From positions 61,690,001 to 61,754,000 of the forward strand of contig OZ076410.1 in NCBI GenBank assembly GCA_964187785.1: a stretch of 64,000 nucleotides of DNA, given 5' to 3'. Shown in pieces: positions 6,742-28,890 of this stretch (the first letter of the stretch is position 1; each line of letters begins with the position of its first letter). The notes below the pieces were generated by a model. It ran no database searches, was not told the origin of the DNA, and was given only the letters and a program-made list of their open reading frames with translations. A program made the translations under genes and the position numbers. This stretch comes from Amphiscolops sp. MND2022. Its lineage: Eukaryota.

Positions 6742-7088
6742 CTAGGTGAACCAAAAAAACGGAACGTGCAAAAATTTTTGAGCTCTCAAAGTTCTAAATA
6801 TATTTCAAAAAACGTTTCAAAGCAACGTTCAACGCTCCTGTCAATCATTCAAATTTATTACATTTCTTAGAAGCGAAAATGCTTTCACACATAGAAAGTG
6901 AGAACGAAATGACTGGTAGACACATCCTAGACTATTTTTGATGGTTGAAACCATCTTTGGTTGATGTGATTACATAATATCAGCATGAATCAAAATAATT
7001 GATAGATAAAATTTCAGCACCTTGTTTACAAACATTACGATTTTGAAGACGCAAAAATTTGTGCATTCCGTTTTTTTGGTTCACCTAG
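6742..7088. mobile_element. Tc1/mariner-type MITE or internally deleted element with TA target duplication
   Basis: TA|ctaggtgaaccaaaaaaacggaa...ttccgttttttggttcacctag|TA, with ~35-bp imperfect terminal inverted repeats. A second right end (ggctcacctagta) lies at ~6080-6093. Confidence 0.8.
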
Positions 7089-7271
7089 TAGACAGAACGA
7101 AGACCTTTTCGTAAAATCTGACAAAAGCTCTTTAGTTAAACAATCAAATCGGCAAGATTTCGTTCTTTTCAGACCTCTAGAGTCACGTTCAACTCATCAA
7201 CTATAAAGCTCTGCTCACTCCTGACAGAAACTAGAACCTCAACGAGCTGTTGATTGGAATTGAACCCTCGA

Positions 7272-7644
7272 ATGGCGGAAACGAAAGAGGTTTTCCTAAG
7301 TCACTGTGTGGCCTCGATGGGCGAGAAAGCGTCGCGGTTGAATGACAAAATCCAGGGTGAAGGATGCACCACATTCATCTGCACTAAGATGGACCCTGGA
7401 CAGGAGTTCAGACAGCAGATCACAATCAATGCTGCCAACTGTAAAATCATGGTCATCTTCTTGGACGAAAGATGGGCCAACAGTAAAGAGTGCTTATCGG
7501 AATTTAACTGCGCCTATTCGTGTTATAATAAAGGCGAGACACCCCAAATTATACCTATTATCGTGGGCGGATTTCAGTGGATTGATCCCCGAAAGTACCC
7601 CATCACACACTGCATTACATCCAACTTTCAGTGCCTGGCTCCTA
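7272..7644 (+). CDS. Exon 1 of TIR-RING-SAM-TPR gene: TIR domain
   Basis: MAETKEVFLSH (betaA), TFIC...PGQEFRQQI (BB loop/alphaB), KIMVIFLDERWANSKECLSEF (betaC, alphaC with Glu), QIIPIIV (betaD). Donor A|GTTAGT at 7645, phase 1. Confidence 0.85.
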
Positions 7645-10136
7645 GTTAGTCAAATCTTTCATGTTTTTGGGCATTCAACAAACAAAGATATTTAACCTTA
7701 ATTGCAACAAAATGGAATGTTGGAGCTGCCCTTTCAGATAAAGTTACAATCATCTTCTATAATAGTATGGTCATCTTTCACTGTTACCCAACATGTACGA
7801 GATGGGAGAAAGAAGGATATTTCGTTTTTCCGGAAAATAATTTTGATCGGAATCAATTGAAAGGCACCGATTTTTGTGTTATCGCGTTTTGCTTTTATTG
7901 TCAAAAAACTAGCGGTCAAAAATGCGTGAGTCCGTCTTTGACAATTTTCAAAAGCAATTTTTTCAATATAATTTTTTTCCACAATTTCTCGGGCAATTGT
8001 ATTTTTCATATTTATTTCTATGAATAAAATGTTTTTTTACTATATAGATAACTTTTTCATAATTATTGGAAAAACACATTTTATTCGATAGTTATCTTTC
8101 GATCGACTGACATGGAGCCAATTTTTAAGATCGAAAACGAGCCCAACTTGCTCGACACTCACAACATTACAACAAAGACGAAATCTTGTCACTTCGAATC
8201 CATTACTCCTGAACAGCTATCGCTTGGTTTGCCTAGTGAGCATTTGTCGTTAAATTTGAACTCCTCATGTCTGTTGGAAAAGCTAGCTTTCATCATCAGG
8301 GTAACACGTTTCCCCCAAAGAACATTAGTTACAGCACGGAGTTTTTTAAGTTCCTTGTTGGGCCTCTTTCTCTCTTAGCACTTTCGTATTTTGCTTTTTT
8401 ACCACAAAATGGTGGACCCAAAGTAGCAAAAAAACTCGATGTTCGTTTCAACATTTTTAACGCTTTTCTAAGTGGTCTCAAAAGAAACAATCATGTTGGC
8501 GTGATTCAAGTATAGCCAACTATCGATCTTTTGTTTGGTTTTCAAAAAAAAGGTTCGAAACTGAGATTGATTATCATTTTTATGCAACTTCAAAGAATTT
8601 TCCAGCCGAAAAAGAATTTTCCAGCCTTTTTATGAAAAATGGGCTCAACGATTAAGATTACTAGTTTTTATTTGAATTTTTAAGACTACAGAGCTCGCAC
8701 TGAAATGTTCACCTTTCATTTTACGTTCGAGATCTAAATCATACCCAAAGAGACAAAAGGCTCTTTGACAGGATCTGCGAAACTATATGGGATCAAAAGG
8801 TTTTGCTCCCCTCACCGTTTGTTCCGATATTTTTCTTTTCACCAAAGGGTCCTCTTTCGACTTTTAGTCGGCGAATTTAATAGGCAAATGTGCCCAGCTG
8901 TTCCAGTGATGTTTTTGTGTTTTTTTCGTAAGACTACACACAGATCGGTCCCAAGTTGACATTCAGTAGCCATGAGCGCTTCCAATGCAGTCTAAAATTC
9001 TTCGCTTGCAAACCTTTGACTCTCGAAGCGTCCCCTTTCTTTTGTATTTCAACCAAAAAAGCGTTTTTCAAGGCTGAAGGTTCGTATCTTTGGGTTGTGC
9101 GCACTGCAACTTTTTGCGACGTTTTTAATCAATGTGGATTTTTGTTGATGTTCAAAAAAAAATTTTAAAAAGCGTTCTTCGAAGCCGCAGGTCGCCCCTT
9201 CAGGTCTTTTTGCAACTCTGAAATGGAAATTTCCCAAAGAACCACCCCAAGCATTTTAAGACTTTGAGCTTTGAGTGGGGCGCCGAACTTAGACGTCCCG
9301 TCTTGTTTCAATTGTTATGAAAAGCTGTTTTCATGTCCCAAAGGTCCCCTTTACAATGTTTCCGCACTGCGTGACTTCTCGGCTTTGTCCTAATGAACTC
9401 CATTGCGAGGAATCTTTTGTGCGCTTCAAAACATTTTGTATTTGCTAATTTTTTTGATGATGGATCTTGCGCAAGACACTTTGAAACCGCAGCTTGAAGC
9501 CGACCGGTGCTTGATCACTTGGCTGCAAATATGACGCCATAGAGCAGAGCGCCGACTTAGAAAAGCAGAACTGTTTATTAGGTGTCCAAGCCGCGGAAAT
9601 GGGGAAAAACTTTCTTCTTGTTCAAATGTAAAATAATTACGTTTGTAAATCTTGAGTGGAGCTGATTCTCGAGATTGTTTTCATTTTTGAGAAAAGATGT
9701 TAGGAAGTAGCTCTAATTGCATCCTATTGACAACCGAAAGAATATTCTCAATGGTTCCACTCACTTCCTTTCAAAATAGTTCATTTGGAAGTCAATGACA
9801 TGTAGATTGAGTCAAGTGAACCATATAAAAGTTTTCGGAAAGCTACTTTTTGAGCCAAAATCGTTTCGATTAGCAGTCAAATACCTGTTTGGAAAGGAGT
9901 CATTTGTCATGAAAACAGGTACCTCGGTCTCGTGGAAGAGCACTTCAAGTCCAAGAGATGCAAGTTGCATCCTGTCTCAAAAAATAACGTCTCGGATTAT
10001 TTCTACGGATTGGTCGAAATTTAACGTCCAAGTTTTGGAAATATGATGACCTCAATAGTCCAAATGAACGAGAGAATGGAATTTTACACAGTAATTAAAG
10101 TTTTGAACAAATCAAGACGTAAAAAGAAACTTTCAG

Positions 10137-11313
10137 TTGGAGATTCTGTTTCAGAAGACAGCAACGCTTGGGAAGAATTGAATGCAACCCTTTTGCAACG
10201 AATTAGTGCCAAAATAGCGGAACTGAAAGCTGAAACAACAGATGCTATGAAAAAGTTGGAATCTCAGAATCAAGTCTTCATGGATTTTGTTACTTGCGAA
10301 ATATGCCAAGATATTTTCAGAGACCCCAGAATGCTTCCATGCTGTCATTCCTTCTGTAAAATATGTCTCATCAACTGGAAGAAAGGCAAAAAGGAATTCA
10401 CGTGTCCTAAATGTCGAATAAGTTGTTCCGAGAATATTGACGACTTGAAACCAAATTCGATGGCAAAACAGATTATTGAAGTGATCAATGTGCAAAACGA
10501 AAGCGGGAATTCAGCGGAAACAAGTCAAGAAGCTACTCAAAATGCTAAGGTCGAAGTTTCTGCCGATGAGTTGGAGTGTGAAACTGAACTTGCGGAATTT
10601 TTCAAGACTCACAAAATTCCAACCGCAATTTCCAAACTTCTGGTTGACAACGGATTTGATTGCTTGGACGTTGTTTTGGAAATCTCAGATGAAGAGATCA
10701 AGTCAATAGGCTTGAAACTTGGGCATGAGAAGAAACTCAAGAAATCAATCAACGACCATAAAAATGCGTCTAATGATGAAAACTCAAACAATGCAGAGTC
10801 TTATATCGAGAACTGGAAGTTAGTCAAAGAACTTTATGATGACAGAATCTTGACATCGGGCTCCAAACCAACGGATGCTCTCAAATTTTGGGCTTCTCTA
10901 ACCAAACAACTTCGAGAAAACATTGTTCAGACGCTCAAAAAGTTGACTGTCGAAGTTCGAGATAACTCGAAAATGCCGAACAAAATGAAAGCCGAATGTT
11001 TGGAAAAACTTGCTATGGTACTTTGTGACGGGGGAGAATTTGCAGACGCTGAATCCGCGGCAACTTCCGCCTTGACTCTGGATAGTTCCCCAGATCGTCA
11101 AATGGAAATCAAAGTAGTCCTAATCTATGCTATGAATAATAAATTGAAACAACCAATGTGGATTGATGATACCAAAGACAACGTCGGCTATGAGACACTA
11201 GCTGAGCTTTGCAGAGATGTTATCGAAAATCAAAAGATTTTATCCAAGGCTAAATTGTGCAAGGTGTACCTGCTGAAGGCATTCACATTGTATTCCATCG
11301 TAAATCGTTCCAG
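10137..11313 (+). CDS. Exon 2 of TIR-RING-SAM-TPR gene: end of TIR, RING-HC, SAM, TPR-like helices
   Basis: Acceptor tttcag|10137 is phase 1 (an alternative at 10155 is also phase 1). RING CEICQDIFRDPRMLPCCHSFCKIC-x12-CPKC at 10295-10414. SAM LAEFFKTHKI...LVDNGFDCLDVVLEISDEEIKSIGLKLGHEKKLKKSI at ~10583-10756. Donor AG|GTAAGC is phase 2. Confidence 0.9.
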
Positions 11314-11651
11314 GTAAGCTTTGTCTCTTGAGTTCTATGAAGTTTAACTGTTCCTTTCGCATTTTGAAAACAGTCGTCGAAAGCTGAGAAATCCTGAAAA
11401 TGGCTTGGTTTTGCTTCTTTACACCTTAATTCCATTCATAGATCAGGAACGATAATGCGCAGTTTTCTCTTCAAAATTGTCATGTTTGTTATTAAAAATA
11501 AAATGACTTGCTTCTTCTGAAGTAAAATTCTTTAAGCCTCACAATGCTGATAGTTATAATGGATCAGTCCCAGAAGCTTGAAGTACAGAGTCAAATACAC
11601 TCGATAGTTAATGTCCTTTCTGATATTGACTAGACCTACTTTTTGCTTTAG

Positions 11652-12141
11652 GTCATTGTTTTCTGAATACTTCCCCAAAGCTGAAGTCGATCTCGGAAAA
11701 GCTGTCGAAATTTGCGAGCAAGAAAACTTGAAAGGTCTCAAAGCCGAAGCGCTGATGACGCAATCACTCATGATGGCGGTCAAATCACGTGATGAGCAAA
11801 GCCGTCAAACGATGCTCAGAGCTAGAAAACTATGTCTCGAAGTCTATGGCGAGTTCTGCACTCTTAGTGCTAGAATCTACTACAACTTAGGGATCGACTT
11901 CGAAATGAAAAAAGACAAAAAATCATCTTATGAATGTTTCCGGAGAAGTTGGTTGATTGATAGACAAGTACTTGGAGTTCATCACCCTGAAACGAAGAAA
12001 TCAGGAAGCGTTTTGACCGAAGATTACCAACATGAGGCCCAGAAACTGAAAGATGTTTTGCCCGAGACATTCGAAGAGCCCACTCAGAAAGATCGAGACT
12101 ACACAAAACGCGTCAAGTTCTTGGATAAAATGACCAAGTGA
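11652..12141 (+). CDS. Exon 3 of TIR-RING-SAM-TPR gene: kinesin-light-chain/TPR_12-like repeats, stop TGA
   Basis: Acceptor ttttgctttag|11652 is phase 2 and matches exon 2. Motifs LEVYGEFCTLSARIYYNLG and RQVLGVHHPET. Exon sum 373+1177+490 = 2040 nt = 679 aa + stop. Confidence 0.85.
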
Positions 12142-13886
12142 CGAAATGATCTTAAATAATTGTATCCCAAACTGTTCATGTCAAATTTTGAATTACTTTG
12201 ATTGGTAAAAAATACTTGCTTACTGTAAAATGAGACGCTGCTACTTATCGACAAACTCTTTCCCGGTTAAATTTACGAAAAACATGAATTTTTATAGTTC
12301 AAAGCAGAAGTTCTGAAGTGAATGGAAACTAGCATTGCTCGGGGAAATCATGTTACACCTGGAGTGTCTTGACATTGTGGTTTGAAATGCAAAACTTAGA
12401 CTAGATGATCCTGCATCTGTTTATTATTGATTTTTCAATGTGTGCCATGACTGAATGACGACTCCGAAAGGATTCTCTTTAGGATTCTCCGAAAGTCAAA
12501 GTGTTTAATTGTGTTTTTTGACATTTACGGAAGCAAAAAAATCCAAAGCTGTGGTAGTTACTGCCTTCACGAGTTGTCAAAATCTCAATGTTTTCACGAT
12601 TTATTTTAATAAATTTCAACGATGAGTGGTAACAGTTGGTATAGTGGCTTGATAGAAAGGGGAAGGCGTTTGTTGATCGAAAAAAAGCTGCCTTGTGCAA
12701 AGCATCTCGTTGTCGTTCAGTGAAGGAAAGTTGAGAGATTAAAAGTTTGCATCGCTAACGCTGGACACAGTGCTGAAGAAAATTAGGTCTTTTAATATAC
12801 AACAAACTGTGAAACTACAAAAACCAATTTCCGACAAATCAACTAATCCCAGGGGACTGCTCCCAAACACAAAATCGCAAAGAAGGCGGCATAAGTCATT
12901 GCATTATCAAACACCATTTCGAGTTTTCCAATTTTTGGCCGGAGTTTGTTTCAGCACATGATTCAATATACTTTCGATCAACTAGTTTTGACTGGATTTC
13001 ATATACAGGCTGCCCAGAAAAGCACACACGTTACTTTCCAAGACTTTCTGATGAGCATGTTAATCCAGGCTACAGCGAAGCAGGGTTGAATCGCAGTTTT
13101 TGTCCGATTAGTACACGACACGTGATAGTGACAAACACTAACAACCAGCGATGTGTCTCAAATTTTCCAGGTTTGTGACCTGTCCACGTCGTAATAAATT
13201 CTGAAGTACGTCCAGAAGATCCGCAACAACCTCGGATTCAATCCAACTTTTTTGAAATCTAATAACTAACTTGGTGCAACGCACGCAAAATTTGTTTTCG
13301 CATAAACTTTTCACGGTGAAGGGCAAAACGAAATGGATGTACTGGGAATACCGGGTTTGTCAGTTGGGAAAGTTTGACCTATTGACAAAGTGTTTTCCAT
13401 CTGTAGTCAAGTTCTAGTTTAGAATAAAGTGAGAATAAATAGAAAGCAACACTAGACAAGTACTTGAGAGAGTAAATAAAAATGGTTTCGTCTCTTTTAT
13501 TTGAGAGATGTTTAATTGGTTCTTCTCTTCGTTCACTTCGCTCACTCCTTGTGCATAGACAATGTTCGACCATTTAATTATTACGAAACTTAACTGAACC
13601 TTTGTTTGTGAAAAAAGAAATGGACCAAAACAAGACTAGTTCTGATTTCTGACATCACCCAAGTTGTTTGATAATCAAACGAAAGTGTGTGGGCCACTTA
13701 AAATGTAGGTTTGTAAACAATGAAGAAACCTGTTTTCATTTTTCATTGATTGTATTTGCTACTTGAAATGGCATATGGCATATCATTTTAGACAATTTTG
13801 TAACATTTGCACCTAATTTGTAACGTTTTTTGTTTGGAAGGTATTTCTTCATTTCCTGAAGACATCACAAATATATTCGTGAATGC

Positions 13887-14056
13887 GGGAGGAAAATCAT
13901 AAACTGTGTTGCGTATTTTACATATTTTGCCAAATCTTCACGATTTCCATCAACTTCAGTTAGAACCTAATTTAGTTACTTTGGCTCAGTTGGTAGTGCG
14001 TCTGCCTCGTTTCATTTTTAGCGGAAAATATCCTGGTACTTAGCGGGCGTCTTGTT
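13887..14056 (+). mobile_element. SINE-like dispersed repeat with tRNA A-box-like segment
   Basis: gggaggaaaatcata...tggctcagttggtag...cttagcgggcgtcttgtt; a diverged copy lies at 48689-48879. Confidence 0.55.
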
Positions 14057-15861
14057 TTCTAATATTTCGTTTCATTTACTATCTTAATACGTGAGACACT
14101 TACTGAACACATAAACCACAATCTCTGCAAAGATTGGGGATTGTTTTCGTTCTTAGATTTTTACTAAAAATTTTTATATAGGGAGAATCTGCTTTTTGAG
14201 GCGATTGTAGGTGATGCTGTGTTCTGTTGGTTGGGCAAATGCTGAAGGTTCTTCCAAAAAAACCTTTTACAGTTAACCGTGATTGGTGTTCTCCTTGATT
14301 TCGAATAATTGTCTTTTGTAATCTCCATTGTTGTTTTTCTACGACACTTATCTCTTCGGATTCTATTTGTTGTTTCGTGACTGCAGTGAAGTTGAGCTTT
14401 TTCACGGTGTTTCTTTTGAAGTTAATAGTTAAGTAGGGTTTTCAATATGAAAACTGGGTTTTTGGTAATTACCAGCTTAAGCTCTGGTGAAAGTTACAAA
14501 TAATTGGGTATATATTTCGATGAAAAAATTATCTTTACTATGTGTGAAGAATGTTTGAAAAACATATTAACCATGTTACTGCCAAACTCGCAAGAAACAG
14601 CGGAATCCTTTACAAACTGAGGGCAACGTTGAACAACGGACAACTGATTCAATAGAAACAAAACGTAAAATAGAAGTCTAAATAATTGGAACATCTTTAG
14701 AAATTATGATAGTCTAGATTATCGTACAATAAGGCGAATCGATGTCCTTCGCAAATGGGGGTGTATTACCTTCTAACAAAGTCATATGCGAGATGGACGG
14801 GAAATAATTTCTACCAACAAATTGCCGTTCTTTACATTTTTGGCTATGGTGAATTAATTATCTCTTTTTTGAATATGATAAATTTCGAATCTCTAACACC
14901 ACTAAAAAACCCTATTTAGAGGTTTCTTCTGTAAAAGCCTCAGTGCTTATATGAAGCCTTTTCAGGGGCTGATGTGAACTAATCTTTAAGTTTTTTTGTT
15001 ATTATAGATCGTTATATATAGCATATACTCTGCGAAAACTGTGGAACTGATGTATTCACTTATTATTTTTGTTATAAACCAAAGCAGCGAGTCTCTTGTG
15101 AAAAATCACAAAAAGTCTTAAATAACCTTAAAAACTGTAGGTTTGTTTTCTATGCTCAAGAACAGTTTTTGAAGAATTTCTCGTCTTTCCCACGGTACCA
15201 CAACAGCCAGAGTTCAGTCACCCTTGACACTAAAAAAAAACATTTTTCTCTGACGATGATAACCTTTAAAATATTAAATATTGTGCAATAAAATTTCTCG
15301 AGTGAAATTTTCCAGGGAAAAATTCATCATTAAATCGCAGAGCGTTCAAACACCTTAAGGTCCTTTATGTTCACAAAGCGAGGGATCTTGAGTAGTAAAA
15401 AGTCCAGGAAAAATGTCTTGAAAAAAAACCTCTCGATTCATCATACATTCAGAACTATTTTCAAAAAATGAAAACCGCGTTAACCGCTAGGCCAAGTGGA
15501 AAATACTTACCAGATTCGCAGCGCTTCTAGTAGAAAAGAAATGGATGGAAAAATTTCCGTCTCAAGAGATCAAATATAGTAATCAGGCACGAGAAACCAG
15601 ACGTAGGTTTCCTCTAGCAAAGTTTACAGATACGTTGACAATAAGGGTAACATTATCGGTTAGCATAGACAATGATGAATACTTTTCAGTGAACAATGAA
15701 GTACAAATATGCAATGATGAAGTAACATATAGCGTAAATGAATATGAATACATCTTAATTTATATTCGAACATATTCATATTTATTGCTTCATGTACAAG
15801 CCTATATGCTAGATATCTATAAAATATTCAGCCCAGCTAAAAAACTCGAGACTGTTTTCAC

Positions 15862-17270
15862 TCATCTTTTTCGCCAACATCGCATCCATCTTTTTCTGAA
15901 GTTACACCGGAAAGTATTTGCTCTCATATAAAAAATAAAGTTCATTGACCGATTACAGGACACGATCAATACAGCCATGCTCTCCAGAAGATCGTCCCAT
16001 TCAGGAAATAATACTTTTAATGAGTAGAGCACTATGTAAGCCGGTGTACAAACCAAGCAAATGATACAGAGGAATGTTACTGTCTGTAGAGCCTTATGTT
16101 CTTTCGGTGACAGCAAAGGTATCACAATGTCATTTGCTTTCTTTGGCTTGAGAGTCTCAGATGCAACGTCTTCACATTCATCAGGTCTTGCTTCAGAACC
16201 ACAAATGTTGTCATTGTCTTCTGTCTCAGAATGTGATTGGTCGATTCGCACACAGCATACACTAGATCCAATATCCAACTTGATTGCTTATTCAGACGAA
16301 ATTCCACTTTTTGACCCAGAAACGCTTTCTTTCGTATTTCCTGCTGAAGCCACCGGCAATATTTCCATTGAATCATTTTCTCCTCTGTTCATTTGGTCAG
16401 AATTCGTTTCCACATCGACGTTTTCAGGTTCATTAGCGTCTGCAACTTGTTCAACGTCTACCGTTACAACTGTTTCATGGTTGCCAGAGAAAGCTGTCGA
16501 AACACACTGACCAGGTCCGCCATGGATCTCCTCCGTCAGATGAGAATAATCAGAAGGGCCCGTATTGATGTCCCTGACTTCGAACTTGGTGCAATTGGCC
16601 CCGTGCGATGCATCAACTGGCTTAACATTTGCATTGGTTTTTGAATCCTCCTTCTTCTCATTATTGTTGTCAGCGTCTTTAGCCACTTTGGGCTTGGGCA
16701 TGCGCCTAGCGAGCATTTGGCGAATGAAAGCCACAGTTGCACCCAAAAGTGCACCTGATTGTCCAATGGCTCCGTAGAGCATAGGAACCATGAGTTGATA
16801 CAAGTTCAACAACATTGTGAAGTTGCTTTTCATTTCACAGACTGAATCTTCGAAGTTGTAGAAAAGAAGGTTAGGGATGACGAGAACGAAGTGGAACACG
16901 GTCAGTGCCACCGAGATCCATCTGATTAGTTTAGGCCAGCCGCGGCTGGAGTCGTTATGCCATTCCGTTTACCTGATGGCAAGAACCCGATCTGCAGCAA
17001 GTCCAATGAGATGAGCGCCAGCGTTCATGGAAGTAGCCCAGGACAGATAGGGGTAAAGTTGGCAAAATGGGGGTCCTAAGGATCGGGAGTCAATTCCCCA
17101 AATAGCATTTGCAATTGTATTTGGAAGTATTATGATCGACGTGAAAATGTCCCATACAACAAGGTACCTGAACAAAAAAACAGTTTACCCTTCAACATTT
17201 TAGTAACCCAAGCCAATCTGCTGAAGTAAGAATGACAAATTGGAACCCGACTTTCCTGTGGAATATTTGT
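15862..17270 (-). pseudogene. Rhodopsin-class (family A) GPCR pseudogene, apparently intronless
   Basis: One continuous frame: TVFLFRYLVVWD (TM2), GPPFCQLYPY...GLAADRVLAIR (TM3, DR motif), WISVALTVFHFVLVIPNL (TM4), C in ECL2, TM5, a very long ICL3, TM6 TVTFLCIICLVCTPAYI, TM7 NRSMNFIFY, helix 8 FRCNF. It is broken by in-frame TAA at ~17185, 16969-16971 and 16288-16290, and TM1 is scrambled. Confidence 0.85.
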
Positions 17271-17339
17271 CACACCCAGCTCCCAGCTGTTATTACAGAA
17301 CGCGATTACTTCACTCAAACTTACTGTACTAAACAAATT

Positions 17340-18390
17340 AAAATGATTTTTGTGACGTCATCAGGACAGCTGAGCTAGCAATACTACATCATTTGGAATG
17401 ATTTTGTGACAGCACTAATTAGATAATCACAATGTTTTCTAAAGCTCGTCGTCACGCCTCCGTCACGACTTGGTGGCTAAAGCTAATCCTAATGCGACAC
17501 AACGTTGCAATTGTAAAATAGGCTCCATTAGGACGAAGATTTAAGTACTACATGAAAGCAAAGTCTTTGTAAAAATATGAAATATGTGGGATTCGTAAAA
17601 AAGGGGTTAAATTAACTTTAAACATTGTGTTGTAAGGCAAAATTTAAAATCAACTCCAATCAATTGAGTGCATAGATAATGTAATTTATCTCCTATTTTT
17701 CCATAAAATTTGCAGTACAATTTAGAGGAACCTATTAACAATACGTCGTCTTTATGTCACTCAGATCTTTCAGATTCGAACTTACAACATATCCATTTTG
17801 ACACCTAACATGGGAAGTGCGACGTAAGGTTACCGTTTCCCTGAATTGAATAAGCCACTAAAGTATGTTCATTCAACCGAGGAAGTGTAGAAGTCGCAAG
17901 AGTGAGTTTACACATTTATTTTACGGATTGTAAAAAAATTAAACCCTCATGATGTTTTTAAATTGCGTTTATGTGGTAATCCTCTTAATATTGTTGTTCA
18001 GTTGTATATTTAACTTGCTGTTTAAGTTGTTTTCCAATTTGACGGAAATGGTGCATTGAAATTACTCGGATGATATCACCAATGATGAAAGGTTCGTTAT
18101 TAAACCTGTTACACCTCAGCATCATTTTTCCTCATTTAGTCCTAACTTCGGAAAGTTTTTTCCCGTTTTATTAACGTAGCAATTTTTACGAGTCATACTT
18201 TTGTCTCGATCTGAAACGGCTGCTTGCCCTTATCTCCATCTCCGGGGTTTAGTACTGTGGACCGTTAGTGAACAAATCCTGGTTTTCTGGTTTCAAAGGA
18301 CTGTATCTTTTGACTGGTGGGTCCGATATGACCCGTAGTATCTCCTAGGTTTCAATTTCTAAAGTTGCAAATTGACTAATTGTTCACGCC
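17340..18390 (-). mobile_element. Probable retroelement 3'-end/LTR-like remnant abutting the GPCR 5' end
   Basis: TGACGTCA-containing LTR-like segment at 17351-17500 and a stop-riddled minus-strand ORF remnant at 18180-18390. No diagnostic catalytic motif. Confidence 0.3.
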
Positions 18391-20189
18391 AGCGTACTTT
18401 CATCGATGGATGTTCAAGTAGACTTCTATTTTTCCGCCATATTTTTGTTCGAACACGAAGTAAGAACGGTTGAACAACAATGTTTCGAACAAAGGATGAC
18501 GAAAAGTTGTTGTGACTAGGAAATTACGTACGTGATGTTTAGACAATGCACTGAAATCTTGGTTCAAAAAACAAAAATGAGAAATGGTTGATGTGACTAG
18601 GAATTCACATACCAGCTTTTTACACGCCGCACTGAAAACTGGGTTTCTTGTGATCAAGTTCAATTTTTTCGATACGTAGGACTTTAAAGGTGAGGAACAA
18701 TTGATGGTTAAAGAGTATAAATATGTGTGTTTGTAAATTACGAGTTATCATTTTTGCTGTACTCCTGCCGAACACAGAACGACTTCGTTGAAAACGTCCA
18801 AACCCTCGAAACATTTTGTGTGATGTCAAAAAGGGTAATTCGAAGCCAGAAATGTCTGAAAAGACCTTCCATGCACCTACATCAACTTCCGAAAAACCCA
18901 AACGAGTAAGCAAAATAACACTCCGTTAGGTTTCGTATCGTGGTGACACGAGCTAAAACGATCCAGGATCGAATAAATCGCCATCAGCAGATGCGCAACA
19001 GGAACAGCACAGAAGCAAGCAGGATAGCTAAATTCAATCTAAGCTCGCAACGAGGAGAGATTTTAAACGAAAAACGTAAGTAGTTACTTCAGAATGGAGC
19101 GATTACTGTTATTTTCTGATTTCAAAAAGGAGCAATAGTTAACGGTTTTTCACTCCCAAAAACTGTGCCTTCCTTCAATTTGTTACTGTGGTCTAAAAGT
19201 TCTCATGTAAACTACAACTTTTCCAAAAAAAATGGAACACCGTTCCTCAACTTTTTTTCATTAAATTCGTACGCAACTGGAGACTCCAAGTCAACGACTG
19301 CATGACGTAATAATCCTGATAGTAAAAAATTTCCCTGAACCTACAGTTCAACCTATACTTCACTGCTTGTGCTTGCGAGCTAATGTGTTGAATGTACACT
19401 TGACTAAATTATAGACGAATCTTTAACGACGAGGCATACAAAGAATACAGTGAAAACCTCAGGTAAAAAACGATCGAGAGCAAAACGCTCTCCATTCTGA
19501 GTAGACATTTGCGCTTTGGACTGTGACAACAACATTGCTGTCAAAGTGGGAAACTCTCATTTGTCCCCGCTTTCCTGAACAGGTGTTGAACTCACAAAGG
19601 GGCAACATACAAGCTGCGAAGTATTTTTTCATGAATTTCTTCATCGATGCACTAACGTCAACTAATGACCTGTTGCGTCGTTACTAATATCCAATAAAAT
19701 CGACTTCAATGACCAAACATACAACTGCAATCAATGGTATCAACATGAAAGTGTCTAAATGTGCGTTCTACCTTAATCACGGGTTGAAGACAAAGGTAAT
19801 TGTCGACTGATAAATGTAGGAATGCCTACCCAGCAAACACAAGCAATCTTGTTATCGTGTTTTCTACGTTACACAACTCTCCGAAAACGTTACGTAAGAC
19901 ACCCACAGATCAAGGAGCCAATAGAGAAAAGAAAGATTATGTCTCTGTCAGTTTCATTTCGACCGCTCGAAGGACATGTAGCAAATTTTACCCGGATCAG
20001 TATCACAGTCAGCAACAACAGTGAAGACGTTTTCATGAACGGCAGGCTGACGTTGGGCACCTGGGACAGAAACCCATGACTTAGGACTGTGACCGGATTC
20101 TCATTCGGGGCGACAGCTTCTAAAAGTTGATAAACAGATCGAAAAACCGAAGACCGCTAGACAATTACAAAGCCATCAACGCAGGCAGC

Positions 20190-23100
20190 ACTAGCGGAAC
20201 CGTGCGCATTGGCTCTCAAACGACGGATCACAGGACAACAAAAGGTAATAATGACAGACGCCAGCTTTCGCGCCTCGGGATACGCGCTAATGATTGAAGA
20301 GGGCAACAAAAAGAAACCCTAATTGAAAAATAAAACCTTTGCTCGTGTAGAAATCGGATCGAATGTATTTTCATCAGTGCAATTGAAAATGATCACTTAC
20401 TGAGAAGAAAGTCTGACGATCTATCACGCCTTCCAGAATTAGAGCCATATTTTGTAGGAAGCGACCATACCAAAGCTCGTAATGACCGACAACAGGTCAG
20501 TGACTCGTTTCTTTCGAACAAGACATTACCACCTACACTATGGAATGCGTGTGACTACGTGCTGCTATTCCATTTCCACATGATGCACGTGGCTGGTGCG
20601 CAAATTCTTCAGAAGAGACAGAACAAATGTTCCTGCAACAAGAGGAACAAGCAAGACAAAATGCGCGTGACGAAGAGCCGACAGAATGACAAAAAAGAAA
20701 CAGCGCTGATACTCATCAATAAAGCTGCATACAACTTTGGAGCAATAAAGAAAGACCCCCGAACTAGAGTTGAACAGGAGACGGACCTTCTTCTGCAATG
20801 AATCAAGTGAAAGGTGAGATAAGTGGAATACGACAAACACTTGATGGCAACAGACCCAAAAGCCAGATGTCTATTTATACACGAGGATAGACTAATTGCC
20901 AAAGAGGGTATACTCATGCGTAATAACTACGGGGAATGCAGATAAGAAACGCACCAATAAATACGGATTCAAGAGCACCTAACAAAAAATCATTTTGAGA
21001 CAAACGCGGAGGAAAGGGGAACCACCCAAAAGAGGCATACCAAAAATTATCCAAGTATGCCGCTCAAAAGACTATTCTTCTGGATTAGCAAAAAAATCAG
21101 TGCGTCACGAGATATGAAGACTGTAACAAATACAAAAGAATAGATAAACGTCGGATCAGCAACACAGAACATGATTAGGCCCAGAAGACATCCTGGAAAG
21201 TGACATACTACCAAATTTGCCAAATTCTGCTGGTTATCGAAGTATTGTCACCATGACAGACGTTTTTTCATGTTATCTGTTTGATATCATTTTCAAAACG
21301 TGACAACCAGAGCAATCGAACGGTCCATCGTCGACGTCATGACAAGACATACTTGCCAACACTCATCCTATCGTACAAAGGATTTCAAATCCGTTCAGAA
21401 GTCGTTGCGAAGAGAGCAGAAATATTGAAATAATAAATAAGCCATGCGCCCACTGAACACGCACAAACGATCGGAAAACTGGAACGAAGGCATGCCTCTA
21501 TCAAAATGACACCAAAAGTCTCAACAGGAGAATGACAATCTAAATGCCACAAAAATATCCAAATTGCTGTAATGAATTACAGCAAAACATACCACGAAAC
21601 ACCTGGGCTGCGAACTGTCCACGGTACGTCATGGACGAATACCTCATAATGTACTTGACTTGAAATTAGGCAACATGCCGAAATGGAAAACTACGCTTTA
21701 TTCAGACAGAGCCGAATAATTAGAAAACCGAATTGACGGAAAGCTCGCGACAGCAACAATATACCCCAGTGCTATGTCAAGTAGAAGAAAGACTACGACC
21801 GTTAAGCGTCAGGAGCACCGCTCAAGATAAATGACTATTGCTATATCCTTAACACGAAGGCTGATAACCAGTCGACAAAACGACATTAACGAAAATTGGG
21901 ACAAAATACATGCAAAAGCTACATAGAACACAAATTCAACTCTATTAGCCAGAACAACGTATGAGTGACGTCACAGTACAATCAAATGAACATTTACCAA
22001 AAACGGACGTCAAAACGCCTCACAATGAATGGTATGCTATATCATGGGAAAAAAGTTTTGGGAACCAGGTCGACGAAGCTGCAACGAAAGAAGCAACTGA
22101 TAGCGCCCCACTCCTTGAAAGTCCACATATACGCCCAAGATCACCACCTACAGCTACAGTTGTCGGATACAATCAGCGAAAAGTAGCGAAGTATAATTGG
22201 AGACCTAATTCTAAACCTAACACTAAGCCTGACTGCAAACGACTTGACGCTATATCTTCGACTCAAAAGAAGAAAGGGAAAATTTAAGGAGTCCAGATCG
22301 AACCGACCTGACAATGTTACAATTACAAGTCTTTCTACGACCTTCTCAATTTTATTCTCTTTCTTTTACGACTCCTCCGTCTTTACTATGGACCCTTTTC
22401 TTTACTATGGAGTTTCTACAAACAACTGAACAATAAATAGAAAACAACTCTTAAACTTCAAAAGTCAACAAGAAATTTACACTAGAAAGGCAACAAACAG
22501 CATGTTCATTGATTCCACAAATAGTAATTCTTCTACCTCTTTTTCGAATCGGAAGCAGTATTATCGCTTGTCCACTTCTTTCTTACGAGCCAAACGATAA
22601 CATCGGTATGACTGCCACAACAAACGTCCGCCCAAGGAACAAACGATGTTATCAACATGAATTCTCGCTACTAGCGATGGCATTGCGCGCACTCTCCATC
22701 GTGCCTACTGTGGAGAAGGCTCCCTGCTTCTGATTGACAGACAATACAAAACTCTGCACGCACCTTCACATGCGCGAATATAGTTGCAGCAGGAACTTTG
22801 CAATCGTTCAAATCAATGTCTACAATAGACCATTTTTTTCTGATGACGATCAATAACGAGACAGCACAACTTCAAAACCTGGGTCAAACTCCTTGGCGCA
22901 TAAAACTATAGTCAGCCAAAACGTATGTCACAATGTTGGATATTTCTTCAGTGCTGTGCCCTGATCCACTATGTCGAAAACGAACATCAACGACAGGTGG
23001 TAAATCCACCACACTCGATTGACTGTCGTCGTGTGATAAACAGCCACTCCCTTCAATTACACGAAGCAACTCCGCGTGAACGCGAAACATATGCTGATCG

Positions 23101-25200
23101 TCGCTATCCAATAGCAGCTCAGGCAGTCGATCCACAAACTCGCGGCCACAGTTGTGAATTTCTAGAAGTATTTGCGAAACTCTACAAGATATTGCGAAAC
23201 TTAGTAGTATTTGAACAAATTCAAGCTCCTCCCAAATTCATATTTCAACAGGAAATCGTCAGTAGCACCCTCCCCGAAATGACACAAATTGGAGACATCC
23301 ATAAACATTTTCCAGTACAGGATTCCGGGCATATCAGTCAAGATACGGCTGGGGAAAGGAGACAATATCTGAACTGGCTAACTTCACTGTAAGCATGGAA
23401 TCTGTAGTTCTGACTTCCAGCTTCCTGCTTCGTGGACATGCAGTGATATAAACACAAGATTGGACCAATTTGGCTCAAAACAAACCACTCCCTATAAAAT
23501 GAACACATCCAAGACTCCTATTGCCAAAAACAATTCCTACGAGAACCATCACAACAGTTAACAACAGAATAAAAAAGACTCGCCTATGTCAAGAATGTGG
23601 AGCAGAAGCCCTAAATCCAGCTTGTCTGCTGATTCCAAACTCACGAGGCAGTCAAGCCCTCGAATCTGGAACAACACAGCCAGCAATGAAAACAACAAAC
23701 TAGTACCCACAATGAACTCCATCCCCAAACAAAAATAACAAAAAGAAAAGACAAAGAAGAAACAAAAGGAAAACAATCAATGTGATAATTTACCTCATTG
23801 AACCCGCTCTTTATGTGACGGGGGCCCGTATAGCCCACGTACTCCCGGATGGAGTCGTAGACAGGCACCAGCTCCGCGACGACCCCACGAAGCTCCAGGA
23901 AGGACACGTTGCCTGCTATGACTTTACGTGGCGAGTTCTGAGTGTCTTCCATCCACGGTTTTGGCAAGGCTCCACACAGCTGCGATATCAGGAAGCCGAC
24001 CATGGTGGTCATTTCCAGCATTTTAAAAATTTCCTGGTGGGCCACTCGATAGCAATGCAGGAAGATTTCAGCGGTATATTCGCGAGCATGGACGAATTGG
24101 CGCTCATCGGACACTGAGAACTCGCAGCAGAAACTTCACTCAAGCCGCGAATGCTGAAGTGATGCGTCAGCCATACTCGTCACTATCCGAGACAGCAACT
24201 CAGCGTTCGGTACACGCTGACACTGGAGCTCCAGATTCACGCACACTTCCAACAAACTGTTCCTTTCCCAGGTTCGGACGATACAGTTCTGGCTGTCGGC
24301 TTGTTCTTCAATAGCCACACCATAGGATCCTAAAGCTGTCGCACGAGATGTGACCGAAAGAAGAACTCGAGGAAAGAGCTCGGCTGATCAGCCATTTTAG
24401 GCAAGAAACAATGCAACCGAGTCGTTTTCTTTGAAATGGACGGAAAAGGGGACGAATAAAAGGAAAGAAACAAACAGAGCAACCAAAGACCATTAGTCCA
24501 TTATACTAAGCGAAGTTTCCGATTAACTCCAATGGAGATTGTAAAGAAGATCTTTTGAGCCTAGGGTTGCCGGAAAGCAACCCCAAAGTTTCCGTAAAAG
24601 AGGTAACTACCCCCACATCTACACGATTTGGCGATGCATTTCACCAGTGTCAACCAATATCTCGAGGTATTTGTATCCCATTGTCGCTCTGCTTCTATCA
24701 ACACTCAAATTCGTAAAACTGGCAACACTTTCGGTAACATTTTGCTTGAGAATGTATATCAAGTCGACTTCTGAGTGATAATCATCCAATTCTATTTAAA
24801 TGTTTGATTTCAAGCTCATCGTCCAAGTCTACCCTTCTCGCCAGCTCATTATCTTTTAATTCAGCCAAGCGGATTTTGTCATTCAATGATTCTTGGTCTT
24901 ATTTCTTTTTCACAAATGTTCCTTCGTCTACAATCATCGCTTTCTAGCTTCATTTGGACTTCGGTCGAAAACGAAAAACCCTTGAATAACCCCTTCTATT
25001 ACTCCTTCATTTCTTTTCGTCGTTCAATAGCCAAACTTATCCTTCTTCAGCTTTGACTGATAGCTCTCGAAGATAACCAAAGCTCTAAATTTATACTTTT
25101 TTATTCGAAGCACAGTTCTATTGAGATCTCCCTCTCCAACTAAACTCAATATTTACTGCAGCACTATTCCCTCTGTAATCATGTATGATTCCAGGTCTGG
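20190..25200 (+). mobile_element. Degenerate Ty3/Gypsy LTR retrotransposon (RNase H - integrase - pol end - antisense accessory region)
   Basis: RNase H: VIMTDASFRASGYALMIE...VMTDNRSVTRFF...TLWNACDYVL (20240-20600). Integrase core: LGPEDILESDILPNLPNSAGYRSIVTMTDVFS (21175-21280). Pol C-terminus: WYAISWE...RPNSKPN (21961-22287). Many stops and frameshifts. Confidence 0.85.
23641..24318 (-). pseudogene. Antisense accessory ORF of Gypsy element 1 (AHQ-motif family)
   Basis: ORFs 24136-24318 and 23641-24114 are in the same frame, separated by one TGA; homologous to 57200-57682. Confidence 0.7.
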
Positions 25201-25700
25201 TTGGCGATTTTTAGTTCACTCAAACGACTAGAGTGTGTCCTTCTCAAAGTGCGGAAACTATTTTTACTGCTGGATATACTAGACAACAAAATCTGTTTGA
25301 TCCATCAAACTACATCCAGTTTCAGAATCTGAAGACAACTTTTAGGAGAAAAACAACGAATCCCCTCAAAGTGATTGGAATGTCACACCTTCGAGAAAAA
25401 TCTTTTTTTGTGAGAGCCGTCAATTCTTTCACCTACCTCATAGATACCTAACCTTTTTCACCTTGCATCATAGATTTCCTTTATCCAACAAATAAAATCA
25501 AAGAAAATAAAGGTTTCTGCTTGAAAAACATTCAAACATGGTTTCAAGATGCAGTTATTACATTTGCTGCTACTGTAGTGTCTGCAGACCACTGTTAAGT
25601 CTTTCCTAACTAAACACAGCGTCAGTGTTTCTCTCCATATTCATGTAAAACAAGTGATTGTTTATTTAAAAACGTACTTCATTACTATTCTTGGCTCTGA

Positions 25701-25889
25701 NNNNNNNNNNNNNNNNNNNNNNNNNNNNNNNNNNNNNNNNNNNNNNNNNNNNNNNNNNNNNNNNNNNNNNNNNNNNNNNNNNNNNNNNNNNNNNNNNNNN
25801 NNNNNNNNNNNNNNNNNNNNNNNNNNNNNNNNNNNNNNNNNNNNNNNNNNNNNNNNNNNNNNNNNNNNNNNNNNNNNNNNNNNNNNNNN
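25701..25889. other. Assembly gap (189 N)
   Basis: Run of N. Confidence 1.
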
Positions 25890-25979
25890 TTCTTTTCAGG
25901 TGTCAGTGTAAGTGGATCTATTAACCGGTTAACCGGTTATAAAACGGAAGGTCCTGTTGCACGTGATACGCCACGCCGC

Positions 25980-27950
25980 GGAATCAATGTCTGTCTAAAG
26001 CGAAATGGCAGTTGAGACCTCTGGCACCGCTAGGCTGCATAGAAACATCTCGCCGGTAGATCATGCAATGTAACAATGTAGCTGAAGGAGTGCTGGATCC
26101 ACTGACAAAGATACTGAGCGGCGAGTGGTACCCACAATATATTTGCGCAGCTGATGTCGACTGCTGTACTTCCTGGGTTGCCGTCCTCTTGTCGCAGACT
26201 TCGCCAAACCTGTCTCCATGGGGGACACAAGCTCTTGAATCCCTACAAGAAACTGCAAAAGCCATTAAACTGCTGATGCATGACCTGCAGCATACAAAGG
26301 GTTAACAAACAACCAACCAAACAAACAGAAAAACTCGAAAGTTAGAATTAACAGCACATAGAAGGTAGCAGCTAAAAATAATAAGTAACTGTGAAGGGTC
26401 CAAGAAACTGCTCGGCTCTTGAAGTTCACGTAAGATGGCAGCTTCTTAAGGAGCACAATCTCAAGGGACGTCGCCCGTATCAATTTCGTCACTCACTACA
26501 AATACACAAAGCTAAAATACAACAACCACCTTAACACTCTCGTCCAGAAAACGACATCTATTACTTTTGAATTGAAACTGGCGGGGTTGGCGAGCAGGAG
26601 TAGACCGAAGTGGTCGACGTCGCATCCCTCTCGGAGCTCCCTCCAAAGGCACCTCAGCACTGGCGGCGGCTACTAAACAACAATCGCCATATCATAAAGG
26701 CGCGACAATAATAACTCCGAAAATTGATACCCGATAAGAGAGCCTAAAATTTCCGAATATTTAAAAGCAATCGTCCCGTTTTCCTGGGGACGTTAACAGG
26801 ATTGATGTAAATGGCGACGTCACAGTTTGCACACCAGCCGCAGTAATTGGCGCACTCGTGACGGACACTTGAAGTCTGTTCTACTGGAGGGACAGTCTTC
26901 CTCATCTTCGCTACAAACAGGAACGACATCAACACCACCACCCGGTGGATGCAAAGCAAAGGACGATGAAGCAGCGGGAGAAGTAGCTGCGGGATAAAAA
27001 ACAGGAATTTGAGTACTTCAGGAGGTTGAATGTCAATGACGGTAAAACTCACCAGGGACTTTGCCAAGCGAAGAAGCACGTTCTGGACCAGGCACTGTAA
27101 TCATTCCCAGCGAATTTCCAGAATGTCTAAGACTAAGCTGTGCAGATACTAATGCAGAAGATGCCTTTCTGTAGAAAGGTACAATTCACAAAAACTAAAT
27201 GGATCGGGAAATGGCAAACGTACCAACTACCGGCCGCTTGTCGACATCAGCATCACTGTGAACACAAACGTCTCGTTACTTCTCTGTGCGCCTGATGACC
27301 AGTATGGGGAGTAAAAGTCATTTCGACAACTGTCTGAAAATAAAAAGACACTGCTTAAACAGCCCAACGCTGACCCGACGTCATTATGACGTCAACAGTG
27401 ACTTGAAAACGAAAAAAAACGTCAATAAAAATTGACGTCAGCAAAACGCTCACAAAAAATTGACGTCGGCAAAACGTTGACAATTATGATTAAACGGATT
27501 ACATTATTCCTCCAGCCTATAAGATCGGCGGAGGATGAGTATCTTAACTCCAATCAGAAAGCGCCACTGCAACTCAAGACGACTTAGAGATCATCGCTGA
27601 CAGCCCGGAGAGCCCATTTCGCACCCAGAAACTTTTGTCGTGGAAGGATACTCCGCCCCGAGCAAGACATCAATCACTAGCAGGGAGGTGATCAACTACA
27701 TGGAGAAGGCAGCACTCGAAGATTCTGAGTCGTTCTTTGTCACCCCGCCTGGGCCCGCGTTAGTACCGCGATTGAGAGAAGAGGCAGCGGAAGCGAATGT
27801 ATAGGAGCTGCAGTACCCTTTCCATCAACTTCGTCACCCAGGGAAAGCTTTCCGCCTCATGACAGTGGCTCCGTCACAGTCCGCTCCCAGTCTGGGTTGT
27901 GGATGCACGAGAGTAGGTTTCGGCAGGTGTCACGGCTGTGCATCGAAGCT
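25980..27950. mobile_element. 3' accessory region and LTR-like promoter of a third Gypsy-related element
   Basis: Minus-strand SSRHQLRK motif (26142-26165) is shared with element 2 (58409-58432); TGACGTCA cluster at 27387-27468. Confidence 0.55.
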
Positions 27951-28890
27951 ACCAAGATGCTATTTTAAATCTTAAACCCAAACAATCAACAAATTAACTG
28001 TGACTTAGTAAGAATTGCACACCTATTTTTAGAGAATCTAGAGTGAAAATGACCACCTAAATGAACAATTCAAAATGATTTCACTCAATTTCGCCTATAC
28101 GTTTAAGCTACGCCGGCAATATATCCATTCTCCACCTGAAATATTAATTTAAAAACACATCTGTAGAAAGATCATAGCCAAATCTAAAACGAATACAACA
28201 TCAAAGATTAGACAATAAAGCAAAACGCTTTTCTGAGAAAGGCAGCTTAATTGCACTTTGAAAGACAATCAATGCAGAATAGGACGGTGCTACGTCACTA
28301 AAAAAACATAAATGTAGTCGACAGCGAAAAATTACTTTGTGACATCACGGTCTCGACTTGGCCTAATAGGAAAATTTGAATATTACGATGCCTTTACGTT
28401 ACAGCCTTGGCAGCTACCTAGACTTCATTCCAAATCTACGTCACGCCTAAATCACCGCTATAGCAGCTAGTTGAAAATCAGTTCAAATTCAAGTCCGCTT
28501 TACGTCCACCACTATGGAGAACTAGGCCGAAATTTAGGCAACAAATTTACCTCCCAAATTTATGAAATAAGCGTTTTGACTAGAATTGAAGTACATATCG
28601 AACGCATTTGAAGCTGCTAAAGGAAAAATCGAATGTTGTCGTAGTATTTGTTAGAAGCGAAGAAAGTCGACGAAGAATATAACGATTCGGCACAGAAACA
28701 TAATTTGATTTGAAAACTTGGTACACTCTCAACTTTATATCGTGGGATTTGACATTTGATCTTTCAGTTGCGTTAATATTGTTTTGTTTTGTTCTTTGTA
28801 TAATGAATTTACTATTCAGGTATTTCAATTTGGAAATTGATTTTATACTCTTAATGCAATAATTGCTGTATATTTTAGGAATTGAAGTTG

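Follow-up and report, generated by a model that had tools for sequence, protein, structure and literature searches.

A three-exon acoel gene encoding a TIR-RING-SAM-TPR protein, a candidate sensor coupling NADase and ubiquitin ligase domains

We addressed whether three plus-strand open reading frames (ORFs) in a 64,000-nucleotide stretch of contig OZ076410.1 from Amphiscolops sp. MND2022 (hereafter the window) constitute a single gene, and what the product of such a gene might do. The ORFs lie at 7254-7649, 10043-11317 and 11611-12141 in the ORF list of the window, and an initial annotation had joined them through GT-AG introns into a TIR-RING-SAM-TPR fusion. The ORFs and their joins were found as described. 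Exon 1 (7272..7644, plus strand, as are all features below) comprises 124 codons and one base, starts with an ATG at 7272, contains the TIR core, made up of strands A-D with their helices and the loop that follows, and ends in phase 1 at the donor CTCCTA/gttagt. Intron 1 (7645..10136, GT...AG) is followed by exon 2 (10137..11313), which begins after the acceptor ctttcag/TTGGAG, carries the last TIR helix, the RING, the SAM and the first part of a TPR-like domain, and ends in phase 2 at the donor TTCCAG/gtaagc. Intron 2 (11314..11651) reads GTAAGC ... TTTTTGCTTTAG, and exon 3 (11652..12141), which starts after the acceptor tttttgctttag/GTCATT (tttgctttag), contains the C-terminal TPR hairpins and a tail. 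The joined exons form a frame of 2040 nt and 679 codons, with phases 1 and 2 at the two junctions and a sole stop codon, TGA, at 12139-12141. All four domains were confirmed, in the order TIR, RING, SAM and TPR, with Pfam, a family profile and AlphaFold models. We regard this gene model, one three-exon gene with a TIR-RING-SAM-TPR architecture, as highly probable. Judging from the nucleotide sequence, the Amphiscolops transcript would be spliced in this manner.

The boundaries of intron 1 could be retained only in part. The intron is a GT-AG intron in phase, as annotated, but it contains several in-phase AGs and the acceptor at 10137 is not unique. An alternative acceptor (10154/10155; ttctgtttcag/AAGACAGC), at which the intron would end at 10154 and exon 2 start at 10155, lies 18 nt beyond the first and has a pyrimidine tract of 0.60, compared with 0.35 at 10137. 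Its position agrees with those of the acceptors in the homologues, 4-5 codons ahead of a conserved Trp, as can be seen when tttcag/AA GAC AGC AAC GCT TGG of the window is compared with ttttag/GC GAT AGC AAC CAT TGG of the homologous locus L001. The downstream acceptor thus appears to be the better fit to the homologues. As the acceptor is ambiguous, the product is either 679 or 673 aa in length; the frame and the domains are unchanged. Alternative use of the two 3' splice sites is possible.

The gene structure was then compared with those of homologues. The closest counterpart with an annotated model is a 707-aa 'uncharacterized protein' of Symsagittifera roscoffensis (RefSeq XP_063714813.1, LOC134842417; P0161 in our set), in which Pfam recognizes TIR_2, RING, SAM and TPR_12. 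It is colinear with the spliced product of the window from the first to the last residue, with 49.6% identity and a common start and end. A second S. roscoffensis protein (XP_063728200.1, LOC134855594, 600 aa), whose model begins mid-TIR, consists of half a TIR followed by RING, SAM and TPR, and is also colinear (41.6% identity). The start MAETKEVFLSH is kept in homologues, and the C-terminal end KRVKFLDKM is common to the window protein, P0161 and another family member, P0019. All seven TIR exons examined have a GT donor in phase 1, located 2-4 codons past a conserved C-L, and the donor of the window (A/GTTAGT) occupies this homologous position. On the other side of the intron, homologues of exon 2 are present in L001, L002, L003, L009 and L010. 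Their conservation begins right behind in-phase acceptors, and a W-E-E/Q motif directly after the acceptor is kept in all paralogues; 10043-10136 is conserved in no homologue. Exon 3 is 64-74% identical to downstream exons in L001, L003 and L009, and two intron-free contigs from JGI that carry family members (L011 and L012) continue uninterrupted across the homologous exon 2/3 junction.

The junction between the TIR and RING exons could also be reconstructed outside the window. The sequence CLQK/DKNQSWEQ at the junction of XP_063714813.1 was recovered exactly from two loci on one contig, the donor AAA G/gtaacc in L007 and the acceptor tttag/AT AAA AAT CAG AGC TGG in L010. The two loci are on the same strand about 36 kb apart, and the junction is in phase 1 at a position homologous to that of the window. 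The first intron of this gene would therefore span about 36 kb, compared with 2.5 kb in the window. TIR exons were found upstream of RING exons on the same contig and strand at distances of about 5 kb (L002), 36 kb (ctg22188l) and 51 kb (ctg183855). No TIR exon was found in the 10 kb preceding the RING exon in L001 or L003, even at an E value of 50; that of this paralogue was located on the same contig at a distance of about 51 kb upstream. Full-length colinear homology and common intron positions place the window gene in one family with these acoel genes.

We examined how far this family extends. An HMMER search with exon 2 over 1.84 billion representatives gave 12 matches at E <= 1e-30; about 20 align beyond the RING, and the others match the RING only. 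Those that align beyond the RING are from ENA assemblies, the two S. roscoffensis RefSeq clusters or JGI contigs. When the C-terminal domain of P0161 was used in a word-seeded search, only family members were retrieved, and a search with the TIR exon gave 4 clusters. Relatives that match beyond the RING or the TIR are limited to acoel-like assemblies and two unattributed JGI contigs. This is a small family, so far seen in acoel worms only. The ENA sample that contains a second allele of the window gene (L008) also carries a paralogue, P0003 (55% identical), with a TIR exon (P0010) on the same strand at a distance of about 51 kb upstream. We considered P0011 (TIR) and P0006 (RING-TPR) as parts of one gene, and rejected this combination since P0011 is located about 130 kb downstream of P0006 on the same contig. 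One of the two JGI contigs, L012, which encodes a SAM-TPR member, has a G+C-rich 3' tail (1384-1579) unlike the remainder, and may be chimeric.

The comparison with relatives proposed in the initial annotation was carried out at two levels, between alleles and between species. L008 is 97.5% identical to the window over 5.7 kb. The coding regions differ at 16 of 2040 nt, with 12 synonymous and 4 non-synonymous differences and no indels in the exons, compared with 60 substitutions and 44 indel bases in the 2492 nt of intron 1. The proportion of synonymous sites that differ (pS) is 0.029, about the divergence of the intron, while that of non-synonymous sites (pN) is 0.0025, giving a pN/pS of 0.085 (Fisher P = 3e-06). 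Between species, synonymous divergence (dS) is saturated, and non-synonymous divergence (dN) is low, with values of 0.077 for the TIR exon (L005 and L006) and 0.15 and 0.16 for exons 2 and 3, respectively (L001 and L003). Within the gene, constraint is strongest on the TIR exon. These values provide strong support for purifying selection on the gene. Taking into account the low pN/pS, the absence of exon indels and the low dN between species, we conclude that this is a functional gene and that its TIR is no relic. The region is best explained as a functional gene with three exons, present as a single copy in an acoel-like animal, whose product is a cytosolic protein of 673-679 aa.

Some members of the family are damaged. 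In L002 (4712-4906, 9947-11236, 11830-15862 and 15861-16079), the TIR exon is represented by its second half alone, and no first half precedes it in frame; a long terminal repeat (LTR) retrotransposon (rve, RT and protease, minus strand) lies right behind exon 2, and the coding region for residues 452-523 is duplicated beyond the LTR element. It is probably a disrupted copy. In L009 (7564-8199, 10001-10744, 11119-12685 and 13449-14018), the RING-SAM region and the first part of the TPR are encoded by two ORFs with about 1.8 kb between them, exon 2 and the TPR exon are separated by a pair of hAT transposase-like ORFs, and the copy looks damaged. Two further observations concern the TIR exons. 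The same 126-aa TIR exon product is encoded, with synonymous differences only (pS 0.027, pN 0), on two contigs of sample ERZ25074608 (L004 and L005), which are haplotigs or the result of a recent duplication. ORFs for a B-family DNA polymerase (DNA_pol_B_2) are found 7-10 kb downstream of orthologous TIR exons, on the opposite strand, in L005 (17165-19054) and L006 (20017-20390), from two samples, which points to an old Maverick/Polinton-like insertion within the long first intron.

The primary structure of the TIR domain was examined in detail. A TIR profile check had been proposed for exon 1, and its product exceeds the Pfam cut-offs for both TIR_2 (PF13676; E 6.8e-12, 46.4 bits against a cut-off of 28) and TIR (PF01582; 2e-07, 31.4 bits against 21.3). 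Residues 1-122 of XP_063714813.1 match it at 66% identity. An alignment of the family TIRs contains 27 invariant columns, including S71, E73, C74 and E77 of the motif W-A-x-S-x-E-C-x-x-E-F-N-C-A-Y. Glu77, encoded at 7500..7502 within the motif S-K-E-C-L-S-E-F, is the candidate catalytic glutamate; it is invariant in seven of seven family TIRs. When the family TIR profile was compared with solved structures, the best match was Cat1 (E 4e-04), followed by SARM1 (0.004-0.008) and then the plant proteins RPP1 and RPPT. In the Cat1 alignment, KSDWCWDEL stands opposite KSKECLSEF, which places S71 and E77 on S68 and E74 of Cat1. Cat1 is a CRISPR-associated TIR NADase, an enzyme that cleaves NAD+, in which S68 and E74 are among the residues lining the NADase site and their replacement by alanine gives defective mutants (PMC12162218). 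The catalytic-type glutamate of the family is both invariant and aligned with Cat1 E74, and the active-site Ser and Glu are kept in all paralogues, whose TIRs are elsewhere 61-88% identical.

Structure models of the TIR and TPR regions were made with AlphaFold (AF2) on the homologue P0161. The model of P0161 residues 1-165 consists of strands (E) and helices (H) in the order E6-11, H14-29, E33-37, H44-54, E59-64, H72-83, E92-97 and H130-154. As modelled, this corresponds to the succession of a TIR domain, a flavodoxin-like alternation of beta and alpha elements with a C-terminal alpha-E helix. A Foldseek search with the model gave 75 PDB matches at E <= 0.001, with top ranks occupied almost exclusively by TIR domains and led by NADase TIRs (SARM1, RPS4/RRS1, PdTIR, RUN1 and AbTIR). 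Residues 130-154 form a single long helix after the fourth strand, with a predicted local distance difference test (pLDDT) value of 73-85 in this block, and structural matches to bacterial TIR domains in the ESM-Atlas span residues 3-155 with template modelling (TM) scores of 0.74-0.80. The homologous segment of the window, AWEELNATLLQRISAKIAELKAE (10166..10237), would be the last TIR helix leading into a helical linker to the RING. The long helix at 130-154 and the extent of the TIR matches to residue 155 support the view, taken initially from the exon 1/2 junction, that exon 2 completes the TIR fold. The sequence and the model both suggest that the TIR is of the enzymatic type found in SARM1 and in plant and bacterial NADases, and that it may have NADase activity.

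The RING is a RING-HC (C3HC4) zinc finger of the TRIM type (10295..10414), with Pfam matches above the cut-off to zf-RING_UBOX (1.1e-08) and zf-C3HC4 (2e-08). Its best solved relatives are TRIM69, TRIM5, TRIM2, TRIM56 and TRIM21 (4.9e-10 and weaker), which suggests E3 ligase activity. The SAM domain (10592..10762) is recognized with the family profile, and the SAMs of the homologues are above the Pfam cut-off. An eight-member SAM profile with the window as its first row matches Caskin-1 best (5.5e-15), and also the SAMs of Eph receptors and tankyrase. The domain is thus likely to be of the polymer-forming type and to mediate oligomerization.

The TPR-like solenoid begins near NWKLVKELYDDRIL, and its N-terminal part (10781..11313) was delimited with the family alignment. 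A profile of the C-terminal region compared with the sequences in the PDB gave matches to KLC only, none significant (E 0.09), and the TPR fold was therefore settled by structure prediction. In the model of the C-terminal 323 residues of P0161, based on a 20-row family alignment, only paired helices are present, about 14 in number (pLDDT 88, predicted TM score 0.86). Foldseek matched this model to LGN/Pins (E 5e-05), APPBP2 (TM 0.60), KLC, Rap and designed consensus TPRs, with identities of 12-17%. The C-terminus is accordingly predicted to be a seven-hairpin TPR solenoid similar to those of LGN, KLC and APPBP2. Pfam searches with the three exon products and P0161 revealed no B-box, NTPase, ARM, death or transmembrane family.

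What could a protein with these four domains do? Caskin- and tankyrase-type SAM domains polymerize, and TRIM-type RINGs need dimerization or clustering. TIR NADases are active only upon self-association of the TIR, as in SARM1, plant TNLs and Cat1 filaments (PMC12162218). Taking into account that these three domains are joined in one chain with a TPR of the peptide-binding type, the protein may be a ligand-gated assembly device with two outputs. The groove of the TPR would bind a peptide or protein ligand, or keep the protein auto-inhibited, and ligand binding would free SAM-driven self-association. This would gather TIR domains into composite NAD+-cleaving sites and, at the same time, RING domains for the activation of E2~ubiquitin, so that one assembly event would switch on two proximity-activated effectors. 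The output would be NAD+ depletion or a nucleotide signal together with ubiquitination, in a defence or stress response. This mechanism of a proximity-activated NADase and E3 sensor seems to us about evenly poised between right and wrong. For the explanation as a whole, that is, the gene, its architecture and a ligand-gated dual effector, we find it on balance probable, and the best available.

The domain content also suggests a role as an innate-immune or NADase receptor, as the initial annotation had proposed. Acoels have been reported in a 2026 study to lack TLR, MyD88 and NF-kB and to respond to Vibrio mainly through acoel-specific uncharacterized genes, and an acoel-specific immunity has been suggested (PMC12849515). 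The family is therefore a testable candidate for a lineage-specific defence pathway. A more far-reaching version would be a single-chain acoel 'signalosome', in which ligand capture by the TPR leads to SAM polymerization and switches on the TIR NADase and the TRIM-type ligase, replacing the lost Toll/MyD88/NF-kB pathway in immunity or cell death. We put this forward tentatively, and it may well prove wrong.

Several results speak against the proposal of a spliced, enzymatically active receptor. The four sequencing runs that cover the locus contain no joints, have a flat depth over exons and introns, and behave as DNA; among libraries with 'RNA' in their description, no run is listed for the locus. 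In sequence, the TIR matches solved TIRs only weakly (E 4e-04 to 0.01), no counterpart of Cat1 D33 is conserved in the family, and the confidence of the P0161 TIR model is moderate (pLDDT 63.7, TM 0.45-0.64). Two of the domains are below the Pfam cut-off in the window itself, the SAM (SAM_1, PF00536, 0.0029, 18.4 bits; SAM_2, PF07647, 0.011, 16.3 bits) and the TPR of exon 3 (TPR_12, 2.9e-05, 24.6 bits against 30.1). P0019 comprises only RING and TPR with stops upstream of its start, and the existence of this TIR-less member means that the TIR is not obligatory for the family. Finally, neither TIR Pfam accessions nor the RefSeq identifiers were found in the supplements of PMC12849515, and nothing connects the gene with infection or symbiosis.

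Some of these points bear on the gene itself. If the TIR exon were not joined to the others, a short TIR-only product would result from read-through to the stop codon at 7647-7649, and a RING-SAM-TPR protein would start from the ATG at 10043. No RNA-labelled run is listed, the ORF at 10043-11317 does have its own ATG, and P0019 is a precedent for a TIR-less protein. Against this, 10043-10136 is not conserved and conservation begins after the in-phase acceptors, a TIR encoded by exon 1 would be without its last helix, donor position and phase are kept in seven TIR exons, and the TIR is joined to the RING in two RefSeq models. We consider separate products very improbable. Still less credible is the idea that the gene is decaying as a pseudogene, or that the ORFs came to lie side by side by chance in repeat-rich DNA. 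Recognizable genes are missing from the surroundings, where repeats are abundant, and the paralogues L002 and L009 look disrupted, but both alleles of the window gene are intact with a pN/pS of 0.085 and no exon indels, and between species all three exons are conserved at low dN. The pseudogene reading was rejected on the comparison of the window with L008.

Other alternatives accept the gene and concern its function. Most animal TIR domains are scaffolds, and the TIR might, as in MyD88 and the TLRs, be non-enzymatic, with the protein acting as a RING E3 ligase or adaptor that joins a signalling complex through TIR-TIR and SAM-SAM contacts. In line with this, the RING ranks second in score to the TIR and clearly resembles those of the TRIMs, and the family TIR profile also weakly matches the TIR of MyD88 (E 0.4-0.6). 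On the contrary, the nearest TIRs by sequence and fold are enzymatic (Cat1, SARM1, RPP1, RPS4, AbTIR and RUN1), the Ser and Glu of the Cat1 site are invariant among otherwise divergent paralogues, and the MyD88 and TLR partners are reportedly missing in acoels (PMC12849515). A scaffold TIR seems rather unlikely. The same biochemistry could also serve a purpose other than defence against pathogens, such as SARM1-like destruction of cells or neurites, metabolic sensing of NAD+ or regulation of the algal symbiont load. SARM1, which has the closest TIR among solved animal proteins, functions chiefly in axon degeneration, TPRs of the LGN and KLC type usually bind endogenous cargo or partners, and no infection data tie the gene to immunity. 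On the other hand, a lineage-restricted family with several paralogues, some disrupted by transposons, displays the usual pattern of fast-evolving defence genes and not that of core physiology, although this argument is indirect. We judge a non-pathogen role to be improbable.

The statement that nearly everything else in the window is decayed is in line with the remaining ORFs. Those with a length of 120 aa or more, 18 in number and located at 3523-57682, gave no Pfam-A match at E <= 0.001, and the TIR-RING-SAM-TPR gene is the only recognizable protein-coding gene found in the 64 kb. Two segments are very high-copy repeats, 7000-7180 and 9534-9714, the latter within intron 1. Their summed contig word depth is 6,000-30,000 (11,000-30,000 for 9534-9714), compared with 20-86 elsewhere in the locus. 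At a distance of about 100-270 bp from the ATG, the repeat at 7000-7180 is situated in what is presumably the promoter; searching for repeats around this region and intron 1 provided nothing useful. A run of N at 25701-25889 is an assembly gap or a masked stretch.

As for novelty, the order of the four domains had been described as one not recognized from any named animal family. We likewise found no named animal family with this order, but the architecture is already present in RefSeq as the 'uncharacterized protein' of S. roscoffensis, and the family is thus unstudied rather than undiscovered. No description of a TIR-RING-SAM-TPR architecture was found in full-text literature searches or in the supplements of PMC12849515. 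To our knowledge, animal TIR domains with NADase chemistry are few, and SARM1 was long the only one. TEP1-type TeTIR/NIR domains have been added as animal NADase TIRs by 2026 preprints (10.64898/2026.09.21.753143; 10.64898/2026.09.04.749371). The genes described here form a conserved animal family under selection with a catalytic Ser/Glu signature, in which the TIR is wired directly to a predicted E3 ligase, a polymer-type SAM and a repeat sensor. If the 'signalosome' proposal is true, they would represent a further lineage of animal TIR NADases besides SARM1 and the TEP1-type TeTIR proteins. The family would also test whether one assembly event can co-activate NAD+ cleavage and ubiquitination. 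If the TIR is inactive, the gene would still encode an unusual E3 ligase, of narrower interest.

Among known systems, the window protein resembles SARM1 in its enzymatic-type TIR, for which SARM1 is the best solved animal match and the top Foldseek entry, in the presence of a SAM in the same chain, and in a helical-repeat domain that could serve as a sensor or auto-inhibitor. SARM1, however, is an ARM-SAM-SAM-TIR protein with a C-terminal TIR, whereas the TIR of the window protein is N-terminal and is accompanied by a single SAM, a TPR instead of the ARM (no ARM match was found) and an added RING; its SAM best matches those of Caskin and Eph rather than SARM1, and no homology to SARM1 was found outside the TIR. 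The TRIM ligases (TRIM5, TRIM21, TRIM25 and TRIM69) have the closest RINGs. They combine a RING, a helical or oligomerizing region and a C-terminal target-binding domain, and are activated by higher-order assembly. The window protein has a SAM in place of the coiled coil, a TPR in place of PRY-SPRY and an extra TIR, and the B-box that would be expected of a TRIM/RBCC protein gave no zf-B_box match at E <= 1 in it or in P0161.

An N-terminal TIR of the TIR_2 type with a C-terminal repeat sensor is also found in bacterial TIR-TPR and TIR-NB-ARC-TPR proteins and in plant TNLs. In the ESM-Atlas, both the TIR and the whole protein most closely resemble bacterial TIR_2 + TPR_12 clusters, with scores that serve as leads only. 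Unlike these receptors, the window protein has a RING and a SAM between TIR and TPR and is encoded by a spliced animal gene, and no NB-ARC or NACHT P-loop NTPase typical of STAND/NLR proteins is among the Pfam matches of the three exon products and P0161. As one defining feature of each group was looked for and found to be missing, the window protein belongs neither to the SARM1 nor to the TRIM family, nor is it one of the STAND receptors. LGN/Pins, APPBP2 (a CRL2 substrate receptor) and KLC resemble it in the C-terminal 320 aa, which fold as a TPR superhelix, but the low identity (12-17%) and the non-significant sequence matches to KLC set them apart. The S. roscoffensis proteins, products of different genes or species at about 50% identity that have neither functional annotation nor literature, are those that share the order TIR, RING, SAM and TPR.

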